Source: Malacoraja senta
Taxonomy: Eukaryota
Direction of reading: 5' to 3'
NCBI GenBank assembly: GCA_038087875.1
Contig: CM075998.1
Location: 1,364,001 to 1,428,000 of the forward strand
DNA: 64,000 bases
The notes under the pieces are model-generated. The model saw only the letters and a program-made list of their open reading frames with translations, did no database searches and was not told the origin of the DNA. Positions 24,879 through 53,764 of this stretch are shown one piece after another. Numbering within the stretch: the first letter of the stretch is position 1; every line of letters begins with the position of its first letter. Made by a program: the position numbers and the translations under genes.

Positions 24879-27073
24879 ATGGCGTTATAGAGCCCCACGC
24901 CACAGAAACAGGCCTTTGGGTCCACCATGTCCATAACAACTGCTGTACTTATCTAAACGAGATTGTTGTTCCGTATAAAATCCCTCCCACATTTATCTGC
25001 ATGACAAAGGTTTGGGAAAAAATTGGGGCTGTTCTTGCATAGAGAAGATGGGTTATTCAGCAAGTGAGTTAAAGGTTATAAGGCGATGTCACAGAGAATA
25101 GTTTAAAGGGTCTGGAACAAGCTGGCACATTTATAACTTAAAATAATTTAGTGGAGAGAGCAGGCAAACTTTTACATACTGAAGATCCTGAGGATGTGGA
25201 ATGCATTGTCAGATGTAATGACAGGCAATAAACACATTGTGATTAAAAATAAGTGGGATAATTGATTTAAGAGATAAGGGAACAAAGTGGATACATGGGA
25301 TTTGGATGACTGCATGTACAGGGGATAAATACAGATGTGAAATAAATGGTCTGTCTCAATATTGCAATGTCTATGTGATGGTCATTTCACATTGTACTCT
25401 CATTTCACTCTAAATTAAGTGCTATCTCTGGGAGTTGTAAAGAGCTGGTATAGAAGTGCATATCTTGTGTAAATACAGTTTGCTGTGATAGTTTATACTT
25501 GCAAATCTCATTGATTCTCAGCACTAGTTTGAATGTGTATCTCAGGGTGTGACTGTCACGGTAGGACAAGACATGTTGATGTCCAAATACCTCATGGACT
25601 GATGTTCAAGCACTCGTCTTGTTGCTCTCTGTAGTAGAATGCAAACTTCAGTGGACTTTTTGGGAAGAGCTGGGTAAAAATGAGGGCAAGCAGTTTTTGT
25701 TGCTATAATCAGCTTGGAAACGGGTGTCTCCACCACCTCTGCAGTATTATACACTAAATTGTTGTCCTGTGACGTTGACAGGTCACACCCAGTGAAAGGG
25801 TTTGCAAGATATTGAGCAGCACCTATAAATAATTGCAATAGTCACCGTTTCCAGTGAAACCAACTGAGTCAATAAAGCAGCCAGTATTAATGCAAGTCAG
25901 CCAGCATGTTCAGGGTTCAAAGTGATTTGCCACTTGTTGTGAATCTCTAGAAGGGGCCATTCTTTGGAAAGTGAACCAACTGTCACACACGTGACCAGAA
26001 GTCATCATATAAAGTAATACATTAAAACATTCTTGTAAGAGATTAATCTTATTCATTGCTATTTTCCTACCCACAGAACTATAATGCATGTCTGCTAAAG
26101 ATATGAACATTCTAGTTTTTTTTTTAATTCACAGAGTTTGTAAGATAAAACAGTTATGGAAAAAAGTGCTTCCATGTGAGGTCACACACGTGACCGGCCC
26201 TATTTGACCTCTGACCCTAAACAAACATTGTCAGCATGACATAAAAATGTCACTTGATAAACTTTGAAAAAAAATATGAATCATATATACAGCACACAAA
26301 ACAATATACCTGTAATGCTTTCAGAATTAGAAGATGTATTCCACAATTTTTCATATTTTTGGTCACTCACGTGACCAAGAATGGGCCAGAGCCCTACCCA
26401 GCTCTTTTATTTATCATCATATCCTTAGCTTTCCGGTTACGTGTAAACACTAGCCACAAGGAACTGCTGATGCTGGTTTACAAAAAAAAAAGACTGCTTG
26501 CTGTGACAGTTTATTCCTGCAAATTTTGTTGATTCTCAGCACCAGTTTGGTAACTCAGTGGGTCCCATTGAGTTACTCCAGCATTTTGTGTCTTTTAAAA
26601 AAATGCAGAAGCACTTCCTAGTTCCTCTCTTCATGGCTTATAAAGTTGAGGCTTTTGATTTAAATCAAAAAGCCTCAATGGATTTAAAGGCTTAAATCCC
26701 TTAAAGTTAAGTTGAAGCTCGTAATTAATCATATAAGTACTCTCTTAATAGTCATCTTAATACGCGTCAATCAATTTTTCCAATTCATAAGCGTAATTGA
26801 AACGATTGAGTTTCATCTCGGCAAGAATTGTTGCAGTTTTAACATTTTGGTTTTGACTTTTTTTAGTTTCCTCTCTGTCCCAATACCATCGTACTCTTAC
26901 TCAATTTATCCTTCTTTTCTCTCCATATTTTTCTTTCTCTTTCTGAGTTGTCTCTGATTCACTCACTTACGCCATCATTCCTATATTTCTTTGTCAATCC
27001 TTAAATCTCATTAGTCGAGGATATAGACAGTTGGTTCTATCATTCACTAAAGTCTCAGTTGCCCCCCCACAAT

Positions 27074-36593: not shown

Positions 36594-37829
36594 GGCAAAT
36601 TTCTAATTCTTGAAGGCAGTTTGTCTAATGGTCTGCCTTGTGTTCACTATATGAAGAAAAATACTTCTTCAAAGAATATTAAGGATGTTCCCTTGCTCAT
36701 TTTAGCAACATAGCAATCTTGGCAGTAATTTTCACTTTGGGTCATCACTAAGGTGATGATATTCAATTGCCTTCAAAGCATTGCTGCCAGTTTTGTGAAA
36801 ATGTGAACAAATGTAACAAGTCATGTGCCATTATTAATTATTTTTTTTGCTTTTGTTTTCTTATATATACTGAACTTTTGTTGTTGTCACGGTGTTTACA
36901 GAGTATCATGTCTTTGTGCTGCTGAAAATGAGAATGTCATTGTTCTGTTTCAGGACATGTGATAATAAAACCCTCTTGACTCTTTAGCTGAATATATAAA
37001 GCCCATTTTACACTATTAATCCAAGTTTAGAACGATTAACATTTAAGAAATTGTAAATACAAAGATTTAAGTATTTGGCATATATAATCTATAAGACCCT
37101 AAGACAAAGGAGCAGAATTAGGCCACTTGCTCCATCGAGTCTGCTCTGCTACTCGAACATGGCTGATCTATCTTTCCCTCTCAACGCCATTCTCTTGCCT
37201 TCTCCCCGTAACCTTTGACACCCTTACTAATCAAGTAAATCCTTTAATCATTGAAGGAGTAAGTTGGCACATTATCCTTTCCTTACTAGGTCCAGCCTTG
37301 ACTCCGGCCAACTGCTTGAATCAAAGACCTGGGAGGACTCCCTGGTGAAATACGTTGAAGGGCTAGGTTTCTTACTCTAATTGGGATCTCTTTGATTCCA
37401 GGTCTGCAAGCCAATAACTGTCCACAAGTTGACACTGAATGTGCAGTTGCATATTAAAAAGCTACAAGGGCAGCCGGTTGGGGAAGAGACGCACAAAATG
37501 AACAGAATGAAACACACACTCCTGCTGTAGCGTTGTTAAAGGTGTCTGTTATCTGTCAGTGAGATACGAAGCTCAGTCCCTGTCGACCCAAGCCACAGGC
37601 CTTCTAGCCATTAAATTGCTCCAGTATCATAGTTTTGAGTGTTTTTATTTTTAATGTTCCTGAATGACTAAGTAGGGTGTGGTGAGAGATGAAGGAACGG
37701 CACCTGGTTCCAAAAGTGATGCTTGAGCGCAGACCTTTGTGATTTTTGGGTGAAGTATAAAAGAGATACCACACTATAACAAAATAGCCAGGTTTCTGGC
37801 GATTGCGTGTAATGATGAAGAGCCAGAGA

Positions 37830-38099
37830 AAAGAATGACTCGAAAATGAAAAGAGAACAAGCCCTTCCTGTTCCACTGACGTTATTGTTGGTTGATACTA
37901 CCACTGGGAAAGTCCCGTTGAAACCAGAAGTCAGCCTGTGTGTTACTAATAGACTCTGAACAAAAGTAGCAGAATTAACATGTTGGACAGCGAGCTGCAG
38001 TGAGAGGGGACAATTTCAAGACAACTGATTTTTTTTTTTGCCAGTCAGGAGATGCCAGGAAAAGCCAGTAAGTTTGTGAAATTAACTGCATCGGTGAGC
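37830..38099 (+). promoter_or_regulatory. Candidate promoter and non-coding first exon of the TANK-like gene
   Basis: GGGAAAGTCCC kB site 37906-37916, GAAAATGAAA IRF-E 37842-37851, TGACGT half-CRE 37877, CTTCCTG ETS core. Followed by two donor motifs (CCA|gtaagt at 38068, TCG|gtgagc at 38094). Confidence 0.45.
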
Positions 38100-38289
38100 T
38101 TTTTGTTTATAAATGCTTTATATGTGATGACTTTGAACAAAGCAATATCTGGCAACAAGAGATCTAAGGACCTATTCTGCCGTCATTTAAAAAAACTGAA
38201 TACTGGAGAATACAAGGATAAAAGGTTCACGAGCAAGAAAATCAAACTGGTGACAAATCTCCGCCTATGTTGCTCTGAAACCAACAAGA

Positions 38290-45412: not shown

Positions 45413-45477
45413 TTTGACGACTTTACCAACTGATGCTACTTTTAAACTGTTTCTTCTTTCCATCCAGAGATAAAGAA

Positions 45478-45589
45478 ATGGAAGAGGCATTTGGACTGCT
45501 GACCGAGGAGTTCAGAAGGTTGAAAATTGTGTGTGTGAGGCAGGCAGAACTAATTAAAGAGTTGACTGAGAAGAGGGAACTAACTGTTG
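45478..45589 (+). CDS. TANK: TANK-like adaptor, coding exon 1 (TBK1/IKKe-binding-like helix); exon begins at 45468; orthology to TANK not established
   Basis: Acceptor ttcttctttccatccag|A, donor G|gtgagt. Translates (DKE)MEEAFGLLTEEFRRLKIVCVRQAELIKELTEKRELTV, resembling the TANK TBD (human IEKTFWDLKEEFHKICMLAKAQKDHL, from memory). ATG at 45478 has G at -3 and G at +4. Phase-1 end joins the next exon in frame. Start codon is inferred. Confidence 0.8.
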
Positions 45590-47177
45590 GTGAGTAAAGG
45601 CAACGTTCTCATTGTCAGACACCGCTCTACTGAGGTGATGTAAAGGATGTTCATCTTTATTTATAACAAGAAGCATTTACGGTCGTGTGTGACAGAAACA
45701 TGAGGGGGAAATAAGCATGACTTTTAGAGAAAATACATGCAGGACTTAGAGTGGGTCACGGATTGGAGTCTGTACTTTCTGGGGTGAAATACAGGAATTG
45801 AAAAGAGACCAACAAAATGACTGTGTTGCTAAACCGAATAGCTTAATTTGCCATACACAATAGGCTTTTACTGAGGGATATAAGAACAGGAACAGGTCAT
45901 TCAGCCCCTCAATGGTGTTCCACTAAGAAGTTGTTATTGCAGAGCAGTACCTTGTCCCCATTTTCCAAACCACTTCTTATTTCTTGATGCCCTTGCCGAA
46001 CAAACATCAGGTCTAAAGTAGGGCCCTGTCGAGAAACGTCACATATCCATGTTCTCCAGAGATGCTGCCTGACCTGCTGAGTTACTCCAGAACTTTTTTT
46101 CTTTTTTTGTTAAACCAGCATCTTCATTTTCTTGTGTCTCTCAATCATCAGCCTATCTTGGTCTATCTTATTTCTGTGCTGCACCTTTTCTGTGATTCCA
46201 TGAACCACAGAGCTCACAAGTGCTAGTGAGTTGAGATGCCTTGTGTGGAATCAAATCCTGTACAACCAGTGTAGTATATTTAGAGCATTCCATGCTATAG
46301 TCTCACTGCAGGCGGGGTCAAGTGAAGGAACATTTGCTCTGGGGTGTTAGCTTTGGCTTAATGGGAGCGGTCTCGTCTCTGAGTCAGAAGATGACAAGTC
46401 CCAGCCTTGCTCCATGACTTGGCTTAAAACAAATAATTTAGTGAAATACCCCTGCATTGTTGCATGTCCCATTCTAAACCGTTGTCATTGGGGAGAAAGT
46501 TGTTGATGTCCATTATCCTTGGTTTGAAAATGGGCTCTGTAATTTCACTTTGGCACGATCTTGCTGCCCAGCACCCAGTTTATTCTGGATCCTCCTGTTT
46601 GAACTATTGCTTCATCCACTTGTTCAGACAAAGTCCCAAGTTAGAGAGGTCTCCTGGTATTCTGCTCAAGCCCCTCCCAACAGCCACCACAGGCAAAGAC
46701 CAATTGGCAGTTCTTCCAGTTAGCTGGTGGGGGCAATGGTAAGGGTTGTAGTGAGTCACAGTTGGCTCATAGTTTTGGAGAAAAAATTGGTCTTGAACAT
46801 TACCTAAGAACCTTCCCCTGGAGAGTGTATGTCAGATGTCGATGGAAGCAAGCTGGTACTGATAACCCTGTCAAGCCTCCTACATGAATAATGGAACTCG
46901 AGCAAGGTATCACAGGCTACTCAGCTCCCTGACAGGAATTAATGGCCAAATAGTCAATCACTTGCTCTCTCTCGGACATCAATCTTCAAATCAGGCAACT
47001 GAACCATCCTACCACAACCCGAGAGCAGTCCTGAACTATTATCTACCTCATCGGGGACCCTCAGACTATCTTTGATCGGACTTTGCTGGCTTTACCTTGC
47101 ACTAGACGTTATTCCCTTATCATGTATCTGTACACTGCGAATGGCTCGATTGTAATCATGTATTCTCTTTCCGCTGA

Positions 47178-47266
47178 AGATAGACAAAAAAAGCTGGAGT
47201 AACTCAGCAGTCAGACAGCATCTCTGGAGAAAAGGAATAGGTGACGTTTTGGGTTGAGACCCTTCT
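47178..47266 (-). mobile_element. Penelope-derived monomer with 12-bp TSD, nested in a LINE 3' end
   Basis: TCTTTCCGCTGA at 47166-47177 and 47267-47278. Confidence 0.8.
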
Positions 47267-47451
47267 TCTTTCCGCTGACTGGTTAGCACGCAACAAAGGC
47301 TTTTCACTGTACCTCGGTACACATGACAATAAACTGAACGGAGCTGACCTGAAACAGTTGTTCCAAGATGTATTAATACTCTGTACGTGGTGTTGCAAGA
47401 TACAAAAGACATGTTAATCAAAACCTCCCACTTTTGACTGTTTTCTTTCAG

Positions 47452-48038
47452 ATCTGCCCTTCACTGTGCCAATACAATGCACGGATGCTGGAAAGCTTGA
47501 CCAGTCAGAAGGACCCTTTCTCAGACCGCAGCAGAAGAAAGTCCTCCAGGGAGCTGCCTGCAATGCACTTGCTGATTCGCGAGAGGTTATGGGGGACATG
47601 AGCCAAGACGTGGAGTTGGAGTACTGCCCTAAACTTGACATCAAATTTCCGTCCTCCAACAAAAATTATGACTTTTCGATGAATGCAAATGAAAAATCAC
47701 TTCACCTGAAAACTGCTGATTTATTGGAAGCTCCAACTGTAGAAAGTGCGGAAGGTTCTGTCAGTAACTTGTACGATGACTACAGAAACACCTTTAGCTT
47801 TGACAAAATCAGGAGTGTCTCGGAACAACCAAGTGCAAATATTCCTGAACCTTTCCTGGGTGGGCGAGTGGTGCTTTCAGGATCAGACTATCCCTTTAGG
47901 GAAAAGGAGTACTCCGAAACCTTCAGTGATTCTGAAGCTGCTCTTGTTCCGGGGAGCTTGGACTCAGCTGTTATTTATCGTTCCACAGAATGTGCATCTG
48001 TTATTTTCAATTCTCCAGGGATGAGTCGGCCGCCACAG
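47452..48038 (+). CDS. TANK: TANK-like adaptor, coding exon 2 (TRAF-binding PxQxT motif)
   Basis: Acceptor ttttctttcag|ATCTG, donor CAG|gtaggc. Open frame DLPFTVPIQCTDAGK...KLDIKFP...SPGMSRPPQ matches TANK landmarks SVPIQCTD, KFNVKFP and SPGK..RGPQQ. Confidence 0.9.
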
Positions 48039-48239
48039 GTAGGCAGCAGTTATGTTGTGAGATGGAGTCACCTTGGAATCCGTACATTATAGGATTTAGT
48101 GCTTTTCAAGAACTCCAGTATCTGAAGTACAGAGGCTTGTTACACATGTCCTACACATCTGGTTAAGGGCTAAAATCCAACCAGAATAGTAGGTTGACAA
48201 TCTACCCCATCTGCTAAATATTTGTTTCAATTTTAAATT

Positions 48240-48478
48240 GATTGATTGAAAAACACAGCACGGAAGTAGGCTCTTCGGCCTACCGAGTCCACGCAACCAT
48301 CAATCACTTGTTCACACTAATTCTATGTTATTCCACTTTTACATCCTTCAGGGGTGGGGGGCAATCTACAGCGGGCCAATTAATCTACAAACCCGCACGA
48401 CTTTGGGATGTGGGAGGAAACCGGAGCACCAATGCGGTCACAGGGAGAACATGCAAACTCCACACAGACAGCACCAGA
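48240..48478 (-). mobile_element. HE1-like SINE
   Basis: Reverse match. Confidence 0.78.
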
Positions 48479-49162
48479 CAGACACTCTGCCACCAAGATG
48501 ATTTGGGACTATTTTAAACACAAGCACTGGTGGGTGCCAGCTATCCCTAAAACACTGCTGCAGTCATTTCATTCAGTAGCCAACTTGCATATTTCAGGCA
48601 CATGCACCTTGAGTGTTAATTGGCAAAGGATCCCGTGCATAGCTTATGTCATACCCTCACCAGGGAGTCCTTGATACTGACATTCAATTGAAAGGCATTT
48701 CATTTGCCATCGCTGACTCACAACCATATACTGAAACTTCAACAAAATGTAATAACCCTTTGTTTAAAATGAAGCACATGGAAATCCTCTTGCACGTTTA
48801 ATGGTTATACCAGTGTGATTCAAGTGTTGAATGGTTCAACATTGGCACACATAATGGGGAGGGGTGGGGAGAACGCTACTGAGGCCGAACAACAATGTCA
48901 TTCAGAATACAAAACGGGACCAAAGTAAATTCCATGAAATTCTGTGTTGGAAAGCACTGCAGATGCTGACACGGCAGATAGACGCGGGACAGACAGCATC
49001 TCTGGAGATAAGGAATGACTGAGTCATTTTCCTTGATCATCGTGTGTTTTCACACCTTACCCTTCCATATCTCTATGTCTCCCTCGCTCCTGACTCTCAG
49101 TCTGAAGAGGGGTCTAGACCCGAAACGTCACCCATTCCTTCTCTCCAGACCCACTGAGTTCC

Positions 49163-49548
49163 CTGAAACATATAAGTTTGTTAAGGGTTTGGACACGCTA
49201 GAGGCAGGAAACATGTTCCCGATGTTGGGGCAGTCCAGAACCAGGGGCCACAGTTTAAGAATAAGGAATAAGCCATTTAGAACGGAGATGAGGAAACACT
49301 TTTTCTCACAGAGAGGGGTGAGTCTGTGGAATTCTCTGCCTCAGAGGGCGGTGGAGGCCGGTTCTCTGGATGCTTTCAAGAGAGAGCTAGATAGGGCTCT
49401 TAAAAATAGCGGAGTCAGGGGATATGGGGAGAAGGCAGGAACGGGGTACTGATTGGGGATGATCAGCCGTGATCACATTGAATGGCGGTGCTGGCTCGAA
49501 GGGCCGAATGGCCGACTCCTGCACCTATTGTCTATTGTCTATTGTCTA
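49163..49548 (+). mobile_element. Young CR1 LINE 3' end inserted in a Penelope-derived repeat
   Basis: Open frame ETYKFVKGLD...SRTRGHSLRI...FFSQR; tail (CTATTGT)n. Confidence 0.92.
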
Positions 49549-49759
49549 GTGACTCAGGCAGGGTTCTCTGCCTGACCCACTGAGTTACTCCAGTATTTTG
49601 TGTCTAACTTTGTTGTCTTTTGGAGAGTAGCTCGTTGATCCCAAAGCTCCTCTAGTATCTTTGGTTGATCCCGTCCCGACTGCAGAGCCTGTCTCTGCTG
49701 ACACCTACTGGTGAATGATCAGTTCATCCCTGGTGACTGCATTCACTGACTGGAGAGTC

Positions 49760-50392
49760 ATAGAAACACAGAAACATAAAAAATAGGTGCAGGGGTAAGC
49801 CATTCGGCCCTTCAAGCCAGCACCACCATTCAATATGATCATGGCTGATCATCCAAAATCAGTACCCCGTTCCTGCCTTCTCCCCATATCCCTTGGTTCC
49901 TTTGGCCCTAAGAGCTATATCTAACTCTCTCTTGAATGCATCCAGTGAATTGCTCTCCACTGCCTTCTGTGGCAGAGAATTCCACAGATTCACTACGTGA
50001 AAATGTTTTTCCTCATCTCAGTCCTAAATGGCCTACCCCTTATTCTTAAACTGTAACCCCTGGTTCTGGACTCCGCCAACATCGGGAAAATCTTTCCTGC
50101 ATCTAGCCAGTCCAATCCCTTAAGAAATTGATACATTTCTATACGATCTCTCATCCTTCTAAATTCCAGTGAATATAAGCCCAGTCGATCCATTCTTTCA
50201 TCATATGTCAGTCCCGCCATCCCGGGAAATAACCTGGTGAACCTACGATGCACTCCCTCAATAGTAAGAATGTACTTCCTCAAATGAGGAGATCAAAAAC
50301 CACACACAATACTCCAGGTGTGGTCTCACCAGGGCCCTGTACAACTGCAGTAGGATCTCCATGCTCCTATACTCAAATCCTCTGGCTATGAT
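49760..50392 (-). mobile_element. CR1 LINE 3' fragment
   Basis: LLQLYRALVRPHLEYCV; EGVHRRFTRLFPGMAGLTYDERMDRLGLYSLEFRRMR. Confidence 0.92.
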
Positions 50393-50990
50393 GAGAGTCT
50401 TACTTTCATGGTCAAATCTACCTGTCACAAGTAACACAAAGTTTGATCTCATACTGTTTCCGTGCTCCCGCTCCCCTCTTGTCCTAAGCAAACCGTGCTT
50501 CTGATTCTTCCCCTCTGGTATACGTGTCATTTATTTGATCCAACATTTGAATGTTCCAAGGTCATTGTTTCTCAAGTATATTGCAGCAAGCAAGAATTTC
50601 AATGTTCTGTTACCAGAACATATGGCAATTGCCTCTTAACTCTCTCGATCAAATACAATTTCAGTGGTCAAAATGCTGCACGTTTCAGGTTAGAGAGTGA
50701 AAGCTTTAAACTTTTCACACCTGCGTTCTGCTGCTGTTGAGCCAAGCTAATCCTGTGCCATGTTTACTTAAACAACTCCTGCGTGCCAGTATTTCTAAAG
50801 CTTTAAAATAAAATTAAGGCATGAGGAGCATCTATTTCGGAGTGGCATTGTGAATATTATTTGTGGATAATCAAAACCAACAGGATGTCAGGCATCTGAC
50901 ACTTGTTTTTTTTTCTCTCTCTCTATTTCACACACACACACACTGTCACACAGCTGTTCTCACAGCTTGTACATCCTGAGAACCTGGACT

Positions 50991-51280
50991 CTGAACAAGG
51001 GTCCCAACCTGAAACGTCACTGATCCATGTTCTCCAGCGATGCTGCCTGACCTGCTGAATTACTTCGTGTTTAAGAAGGAACTGCAGATGCTGGAAAATC
51101 GAAGGTAGACAAAAATGCTGGAGAAGGGTCTCGACCCGAAACGTTGCCTATTTCCTTCGCTCCATAGATGCTGCCTCACCCGCTGAGTTTCTCCAGCATT
51201 TTTGTCTACCTGCTGAATTACTTCAGTACTTTATCTTTTTTTTTGTAAACCAGCATCGGCAGTTCCTTCTATTTCATCTC
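50991..51280. mobile_element. Nested Penelope-derived repeats (younger fold-back inside an older copy)
   Basis: 17-bp duplication ACCTGCTGAATTACTTC at 51050-51066 and 51208-51224. Confidence 0.8.
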
Positions 51281-52074
51281 TCTCTGTCTGTCAGGACATG
51301 ATGGGAGTGATAGAGCTATACAGCATGGGAGGAACAGGCCGCTCTGCCCATTTTGTCCATGCCGACCAAGTTGGCATTCCGGGCTCGTCTCATTTGCCTG
51401 CATTTGGTCCCTATCCCTCTCAACCCTAGCGGCACCTCCCGGTCATTTTCTGTATTGTGGAGCCAAACACCTGACTACACAGCCGTCCAGCCCGACTACT
51501 GCAGGTACAGTCAGCCATTCTTCCCGCTGGTATCCCTACTGAATTGCAACATTTCCAAGGCACCTCACAGTCCCGCTTCCCTGTATTGCAAAGAAGCAGG
51601 AATCCATCCCTACCCTTGTATGTTTTGCAAACCTCATGTATGGTTTCCTCAGCCTTAAAAAGGATTAATGAAGCAGATGGATACTTCTAAATGAATGACT
51701 ATTCTTTAATAAACCTGGAATAATCAAGGTCACTAGTTATTACCTTTTGATTAAATTTCATAATTTACTACTTTGATTCCAAAAAAATGTAATGGCCAAT
51801 TGTACTTTTATTGACACGTGTGCAAACACACAGTGAACTTATTTTCTTATATACTGTCCCGTAAAGTATTACTTTTTGATTGTGCTTCAGAATGCAGAGT
51901 GCAAACAAATAAACATTTCAGTGACTCAGTCATTAATGGTGACCAAGAGTACATTTTGTATTCTATGCAATAATATAAACTTGTGAAATAGTGCCATGGT
52001 ATGAAAGATCCGCCAATGGCACAAACTGTTCCGTGTACGTGAACAATGCTGACCGTGTTTCTGATTGACCACAG

Positions 52075-52254
52075 AGCCCGTGGAGCCCTCATCATTTGCC
52101 TGAAGATTGCTGTGCAGGACATGAAGCCACATTGAACTCGGAATCAAGCCTCACTTCCCGAGTCTGTGAATTCTGCCAGGCCGTGTTTCCAGCCGGAGCG
52201 GCAACCCGAGGTGATTACTTGGTGCACCTCACTGGACATATTGAATGCGATTAA
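52075..52254 (+). CDS. TANK: TANK-like adaptor, last coding exon (UBZ-type C2H2 zinc finger)
   Basis: Acceptor ...gaccacag|AGC, phase 0. Translates SPWSPHH...SRVCEFCQAVFPAGAATRGDYLVHLTGHIECD*, matching the TANK C-terminus RVCEFCQAVFP..RGD.L.HL..H. Not listed in the ORF track. Confidence 0.92.
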   Translation, partial: SPWSPHHLPEDCCAGHEATLNSESSLTSRVCEFCQAVFPAGAATRGDYLVHLTGHIECD

Positions 52255-53015: not shown

Positions 53016-53764
53016 TTTAACACATGATGGTTGCATTGGCTCCCTTTAAGGGCTATCCATTCAGTTTCCTTTTCCTTTATTTCTGCACCTTGTCGCATTT
53101 CAAGAATTTATCTGATTCTCATTTTGAAAATTATTATTGTATCTGCTTGGACCATTTTTTTAAAAAGAAATGACAGTCAAATTCTAACAAATTCCTATCT
53201 ATTTCTTTTGCTGCTTTTTTTTGCCAATTATGTTGAAAATGTTACCTTTCCATTGCTGACACTGTTGGTGAAAATACCGTCATCTTATGTAATGCAGCCA
53301 AAACCTTCACGACTAAGATCGCGTTTTTAAAATGAACTCATTAGATCTGTGCGTCTGACAAGGCCAACATTTATTGCCCCTCTAATTGCCCTCTTCAGTG
53401 GATAACCAGCATCTGCAGTTCCTTTCTATACCTTCTATATAATCTGGGAAGGAAATGCAGATTGATATTCCTGCATAACAAGGAGGAAGCAAAAGCTGCA
53501 CGTTTTTGCTGTCAAATGGCCGGAGAGAAGGTTGCTTCTCATCAAAAGCAGCCCTTGTACCTTGTGCGATTGAAGTTGATTCAATCGCGATTGTGCGATG
53601 AAGTTGCCTAATTGGGGGCCAGGTATCCACAGTGGCAATGAGTCTTCTCGCGCCACTGATACTGGGCACGCCTGATTTTTTTAGATTGGCTCGTGGCTGG
53701 CAGCAACACGATGCCTGCTCGCTACAAGCGCATGGGCTGTCCCTGTGTGGTCACTTTACATCTT

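Follow-up and report, generated by a model that had tools for sequence, protein, structure and literature searches.

A gene related to the TBK1 adaptor TANK occupies positions 45468-52254 (plus strand, coding part) of a 64,000-nucleotide stretch of the Malacoraja senta genome (GenBank assembly GCA_038087875.1, contig CM075998.1, positions 1,364,001 to 1,428,000; hereafter the window). With a rough probability of 0.85, this locus is the skate ortholog of a short vertebrate TANK paralog annotated as 'TANK-like' or 'zgc:113184', and distinct from the canonical TANK gene. The gene is intact and consists of four exons, one 5′ non-coding and three coding; its 292-residue product, disordered for the most part, is the counterpart of the C-terminal ~280 residues of TANK. 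The family is already catalogued, in RefSeq and under the UniRef names 'TANK-like' and 'zgc:113184', and is uncharacterised: the ESM Atlas holds a 78-member cluster named zgc:113184, and a literature search for zgc:113184 or 'TANK-like' in connection with TBK1 found no paper, two apparent matches being mere coincidences of PMC identifiers. The outcome is thus a sound annotation of a known, unstudied gene, rather than a discovery or a new kind of system.

Coding exon A (45468-45589, +) is preceded by a polypyrimidine tract and an AG acceptor at 45466-45467, a context also kept in Amblyraja and Pristis, and is followed by a GT donor at 45590 (GTGAGT). From a start codon at 45478, it encodes the TBK1-binding-domain (TBD) helix, comprising residues 1-37 and one base of codon 38. 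Coding exon B (47452-48038, +), which has AG/GT borders, supplies residues 38-233, with the TRAF motif PIQCTD at its start, followed by SEGPF, an LDIKFP motif and a long disordered middle. Coding exon C (52075-52254, +) lies behind an AG and encodes a C2H2 (UBZ-like) zinc finger, CEFCQAVFP...HLTGH, before a TAA stop codon at 52252-52254 and the 3′ untranslated region. An earlier note, made from the DNA letters alone, had proposed that three exons join in frame into a 292-residue reading frame from an ATG at 45478 in strong Kozak context. Both points were borne out: the splice signals yield an 879-nucleotide coding sequence (292 codons plus stop) with zero internal stops, and the start codon has G at both -3 and +4. 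Read-through at the exon B donor (48039-48095, +) would append a short in-frame tail, VGSSYVVRW..., and then a stop, and may produce a finger-less isoform; an annotated Narcine isoform without the zinc finger (P0008) ends in a comparable retained-intron tail, VGNCYVLRW.... An Rfam scan of the 64-kb window gave no match.

The closest relative of the product is the annotated 'TANK-like' protein of Amblyraja radiata, which is likewise 292 residues long and 98% identical. An exhaustive phmmer search with exon B retrieved short annotated proteins with the same start methionine in electric ray, whale shark and caecilian; these short relatives are named 'TANK-like' or uncharacterised, and elephant-shark full-length TANK appeared in the same search as a weak match. 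Short orthologs of 171-309 residues are annotated in more than 30 species, spanning nine elasmobranch genera, frogs, caecilians, newts, coelacanth, sturgeon, paddlefish, bichir and teleosts, and several carry the NCBI name 'uncharacterized protein zgc:113184', after the zebrafish gene. The start methionine, TBD helix, PIQCT, SEGPF and four zinc ligands are common to all members of a 14-sequence alignment, two of which extend 9-12 residues before the shared methionine. RefSeq models in more than 15 species begin either at this methionine or 9-12 residues ahead of it. The skate gene clusters with these annotated members and shares their start methionine, three coding exons and splice phases. Compared over their full lengths with the proteins of Amblyraja radiata, Pristis pectinata, Latimeria, Polyodon and Etheostoma, the skate protein has the same architecture and differs in nothing of substance, and it is best described as one more ortholog; teleost zgc:113184 members are shorter (171-217 residues).

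That the locus is a TANK paralog distinct from TANK, as the earlier note had suggested, is supported by the presence of both genes in the same species. Full-length TANK proteins (426-498 residues), retrieved using elephant-shark TANK as the query, occur in the short-gene carriers Heterodontus, Stegostoma, Chiloscyllium, Narcine, Pristis and Pristiophorus, and the frog Rhinophrynus also has both the short gene and full-length TANK. In those species for which contigs are recorded, the contig with TANK measures 100-320 Mb and the one with the short gene is smaller in each case (16-38 Mb; 103 Mb in Narcine). The phylogeny that the note had called for was run with TANK. In the resulting unrooted maximum-likelihood tree of 41 sequences, a single branch with 100/100 support divides the short proteins, the skate protein among them, from 18 TANK sequences, and on either side there are both chondrichthyan and osteichthyan subclades, ordered roughly as in the species tree. 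Were the root to fall on this branch, the duplication would be older than the radiation of jawed vertebrates.

All exon boundaries and splice sites of the short gene are kept in the Amblyraja (L001) and Pristis (L002) loci. The ratio of non-synonymous to synonymous substitution rates (dN/dS) is 0.16 against Amblyraja and 0.24 against Pristis, within an overall range of 0.16-0.29. Since dN/dS is low and the splice sites are kept while the introns diverge at neutral-looking identity, the locus is read as an intact gene under purifying selection and not as a relic. Alignment with Amblyraja and Pristis could not discriminate conserved non-coding blocks, as the introns align at 93-95% and 70-80%, respectively.

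The short protein is collinear over its whole length with residues 202-476 of Narcine TANK (also known as I-TRAF; E 5e-24). Both proteins contain the TBD helix, PIQCTD, the LDIKFPP/YDFL block and the CEFCQAVFP...H-x3-H finger, and the TBD exon begins at the equivalent position in the two genes. In contrast with TANK, the short protein lacks the N-terminal coiled-coil region of ~200 residues; overall identity is ~27%, and the two fall in separate clades. The elephant shark (Callorhinchus milii) has three recorded TANK products, of which the full-length one has 471 residues. Another, of 299 residues, has an alternative 11-residue head and then continues as TANK from the TBD exon, with one residue differing near the C-terminus; a format running from the TBD to the end is therefore also made from the canonical gene. 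The third, the 205-residue 'LOC121849405', comprises the N-terminal coiled-coil part only.

The other known adaptors, NAP1 (AZI2) and SINTBAD (TBKBP1), have the TBD in common with the short protein, and its QAELL-x-KL helix core resembles the AZI2 fragment in PDB entry 5ep6, which was matched weakly (E 0.19) in a profile search of the PDB. Matches to decorin-binding protein in that search were rejected as spurious. NAP1 and SINTBAD are not known to have a PIQCT motif or a C-terminal finger. NAP1 and SINTBAD carry homologous N-terminal coiled coils that bind NDP52 and TAX1BP1 (PMC11883510).

The retention of a TBD-like helix, PIQCT and a zinc finger, which the earlier note had listed, was upheld by profile, alignment and structure prediction. 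The N-terminal helix is a predicted member of the Pfam TBD family (PF12845), assigned at the gathering score through the 98%-identical Amblyraja protein (P0023), which scores 31.2 bits over residues 1-49 against a gathering score of 27. Exon A by itself reaches 19.9 bits (E 6.7e-4), and other members of the short family score 30.7-43.9 bits. The note's further claim that the TBD has diverged more than the finger stood only in part: it agrees with a comparison against batoid TANK (~24% identity in the helix, ~59% in the finger), but not with the Pfam TBD profile, against which short proteins score as well as TANK (31-44 and 28-43 bits, respectively). The PIQCTD motif at the start of exon B is of the PxQxT TRAF-binding type, follows the TBD and aligns with PIQCTD of TANK; its P, Q, C and T do not vary among the 14 aligned family members, and binding to TRAFs is predicted.

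Zinc ligands C264, C267, H284 and H288 (C-x2-C...H-x3-H) are likewise invariant in the 14-sequence alignment. AlphaFold2, given the family alignment as input, predicts a confident helix at residues 2-32 and a beta-beta-alpha finger at residues 262-290 (predicted local distance difference test score 73-79), with disorder between them. In the model, the ligands lie on the beta-beta-alpha fold expected of a UBZ-type finger. A Foldseek search with the mostly disordered model gave no significant match. Its top rows include the ubiquitin-bound UBZ domains TAX1BP1 UBZ2 and NDP52 ZF2, with target-normalised template modelling scores of 0.69-0.74 but E of 2-7, values that a domain of only ~30 residues would be expected to give. 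The Pfam family Zn-C2H2_12 matches TANK weakly and the short proteins not at all. The predicted structure is consistent with assignment of the C-terminal finger to the UBZ class, but does not prove it.

Canonical TANK has ~200 residues before its TBD, which give weak matches to coiled-coil families and have no counterpart in the short protein, which begins at the TBD. When 16 full-length TANK proteins were compared with the 64-kb window by tblastn, only exons B and C matched and nothing corresponded to TANK residues 1-200, in agreement with the earlier note, which had found no upstream exon resembling the TANK N-terminus. A composition-based hunt upstream for coiled-coil-like open frames yielded none that was convincing. 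Weak minus-strand tblastn matches at 53447-53704, obtained with many TANK queries, were rejected as chance, the translation having no finger motif.

An upstream exon must nonetheless exist, because an acceptor precedes exon A at 45467, and the 9-12 extra N-terminal residues of the Stegostoma, Chiloscyllium and Pristiophorus RefSeq models must come from such an exon. It was located solely via the Stegostoma locus, a pattern search for short ATG-plus-donor exons having given too many candidates. Window positions 37827-38108 align with Stegostoma tigrinum RefSeq exon 1 (L006 9777-10058) at 68% identity over 295 bp (E 1e-22), and a GTAAG donor is in register between the two. On the basis of this donor, the 3′ end of the exon is placed at 38067 and its donor GT at 38068-38069; the exon and proximal promoter together form a block at 37827-38067 (+).

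This exon contains an upstream ATG (38052-38067, +) that is out of frame with the main open reading frame in skates. From ATG to donor there are 16 nucleotides in the window and in Amblyraja and 17 in Stegostoma (13 and 14 after the ATG itself), where exon 1 ends ATG-GAA-GGG-AAA-ATC-CA|GTAAG and the upstream ATG is in frame (MEGKIH...). In sharks such as Stegostoma and Chiloscyllium, an in-frame upstream ATG supplies the 9-12 additional residues, whereas skates have it in another frame. After splicing to 45468, the upstream open reading frame from 38052 would comprise 16 codons and run across the main ATG to its end at 45502. The main frame has a stop within the 5′ exon, with no ATG between this stop and 45478. 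Because the upstream ATG is out of frame and the main frame is stopped upstream, ATG 45478 is taken as the start, matching the Amblyraja annotation. The 5′ exon adds no coiled coil and is non-coding in skates.

Two motifs in the promoter block suggest, from their sequence conservation, that the short gene may be under NF-kB and IRF control. A kB-type site, GGGAAAGTCCC (37906-37916, +), is conserved between skate and zebra shark and is the sole copy in 64 kb, where 0.02 are expected. It lies at the homologous place in Amblyraja (L001) and Stegostoma (L006), inside a perfectly conserved 14-nucleotide run, and its function is a predicted one. An IRF-type core resembling the interferon-stimulated response element (ISRE), GAAAATGAAAAGAGAA (37842-37857, +), is a low-information motif notable solely for its conservation, standing inside a stretch of 17 nucleotides that the window and Stegostoma have unchanged in common, in the midst of the 68%-identical block. 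Separately, a near-consensus ISRE, GAAAAGGAAACTGAA, is present at 53060-53074 (-), ~800 bp downstream of the stop codon, and is the sole match to GAAANNGAAANNGAA in the window (0.1 expected).

It is proposed that the N-terminal helix would engage TBK1 or IKK-epsilon and that TRAFs and ubiquitin chains would be bound by PIQCT and the zinc finger. The short protein could then link or sequester TBK1/IKK-epsilon at TRAF/ubiquitin platforms without the N-terminal module and compete with other adaptors, its role probably being that of an inducible modulator. Each of the three known adaptors binds coiled-coil 2 of TBK1 via its TBD, and they compete for this site (PMC3169550). TANK also binds NEMO directly (PMC11576971). 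The earlier note had put forward a protein that binds TRAFs and ubiquitin, cannot dimerise like TANK and acts as a decoy or modulator; from the modules retained and missing, this is a reasonable inference. The most likely role is that of an infection-inducible competitor or feedback modulator, inducibility being favoured because a kB site and an IRF-like motif are conserved in the promoter block.

A different view of the same gene is that its product is a stand-alone positive adaptor and no decoy, recruiting and activating TBK1/IKK-epsilon at TRAF, NEMO or ubiquitin platforms, with the coiled coil dispensable. All mapped partner modules of the C-terminal two thirds of TANK are retained, and elephant-shark TANK has a short product from the TBD exon (P0015), so that being short may be quite usual for a functioning adaptor. 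Nothing in the present evidence separates activation from inhibition, but as the three known adaptors compete for one TBK1 site, any extra adaptor would also be a competitor. An activating role is regarded as a possibility of some weight, if one that would probably prove wrong. Far less probable are two readings in which the locus would not be a separate working gene. The good acceptor before 45468 demands an upstream exon, and stretches within 829-11273 are unreadable, so the three coding exons might be the last of an ordinary TANK gene whose coiled-coil exons lie beyond the window or in runs of N. However, the upstream exon that was found, ending at 38067, has no coiled-coil capacity, carries a main-frame stop and offers no ATG; the RefSeq models start at or just before the shared methionine; full-length TANK is on other chromosomes in related species; and both the 100/100 split in the tree and the negative tblastn result for TANK residues 1-200 in the window speak for a separate gene. 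This explanation is largely refuted and keeps only a slight chance.

Slighter still is the chance that the locus is a decaying partial TANK duplicate, a pseudogene with a reading frame open by accident. Beside TANK the gene does look truncated, and Narcine has annotated isoforms without the zinc finger, but a dN/dS of 0.16-0.29 and the retention of every splice site are not those of a decaying copy, sharks, frogs and teleosts all have the same architecture, and the TBD, PIQCT and finger ligands are invariant. The earlier note had itself named, as results that would speak against a distinct paralog, coiled-coil exons spliced onto 45468 and a sole TANK locus in canonical synteny; instead, the exon spliced onto 45468 has no coiled-coil capacity, and six elasmobranchs and a frog with the short gene have a separate full-length TANK.

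Several points weigh against identification of the locus as a short paralog with the modulatory role proposed above. Three runs of N far upstream are unreadable (829-1166, 338 bases; 9236-9435, 200 bases; 10428-11273, 846 bases), each of them over 26 kb before the 5′ exon. It is by homology with the RefSeq models of other species that this exon, its splice to 45468 and expression of the gene are deduced, and a separate TANK locus in the Malacoraja senta genome is predicted from other species. Neither Pfam nor Foldseek matches the finger significantly, conservation of the promoter motifs extends over two readable lineages only, and binding to TBK1, TRAFs and ubiquitin is predicted only.

Gene order was compared in two species, Danionella and paddlefish. 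In Danionella, the neighbours of the short gene are diacylglycerol kinase, OB-fold SSB-like, DUF3456/CNPY-type, NAB-type and DnaJ+Jiv90 genes; in paddlefish, a zf-U11-48K gene and a Band-3/HCO3 transporter flank it. No exons of these neighbour genes were found in the window. Each neighbour family presumably has a member at human 12q13, and the TANK region at human 2q24 is assumed to carry paralogs of some of them. A position of the short gene in the HOXC-linked paralogon, opposite the HOXD-linked 2q24 of TANK, would fit this arrangement. In a more speculative reading, which as a whole is unlikely to hold in every part, the short gene would be a fourth TBD adaptor that arose in the early vertebrate genome duplications, was retained in cartilaginous fishes, ray-finned fishes, coelacanth and amphibians, was lost in amniotes, and acts as an NF-kB/IRF-inducible, coiled-coil-free feedback competitor for the one adaptor site on TBK1/IKK-epsilon. 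No amniote member of the short family appeared in the protein search, itself not exhaustive. In a separate observation, no Callorhinchus member of the family turned up.

Work on TBK1 counts three TBD adaptors (TANK, NAP1 and SINTBAD), and non-amniote vertebrates appear to carry a fourth. As the short gene is in effect TANK minus its N-terminal coiled coil, it offers a natural separation-of-function experiment on the coiled coil. In the immunity of fishes, zebrafish included, and of amphibians, it may further be regarded as a candidate for an additional regulator of interferon and NF-kB signalling. A study in carp described several 'TANK' paralogues induced by poly I:C and left them unresolved (PMC13355688).

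Among the annotated models, the 461-residue Danionella cerebrum protein P0071 (L004 10001-26676) is probably a chimera, as it spans other genes on the opposite strand; within L004, only 25334-26673 is homologous to the short gene. Elsewhere, the window contains six copies of a short interspersed repeat whose core is GACCCGAAACGT (15513, 24764, 32714, 42182, 49117 and 51133), two of them inside the intron between exons B and C, and the translation of this repeat (KKGLDPKRHPFLLS...) is present in many spurious open reading frames. A 140-residue open reading frame (YYKPIDSHNYLDYT...SCKDS...) at 24003-24425 (-) is presumably a retroelement fragment.

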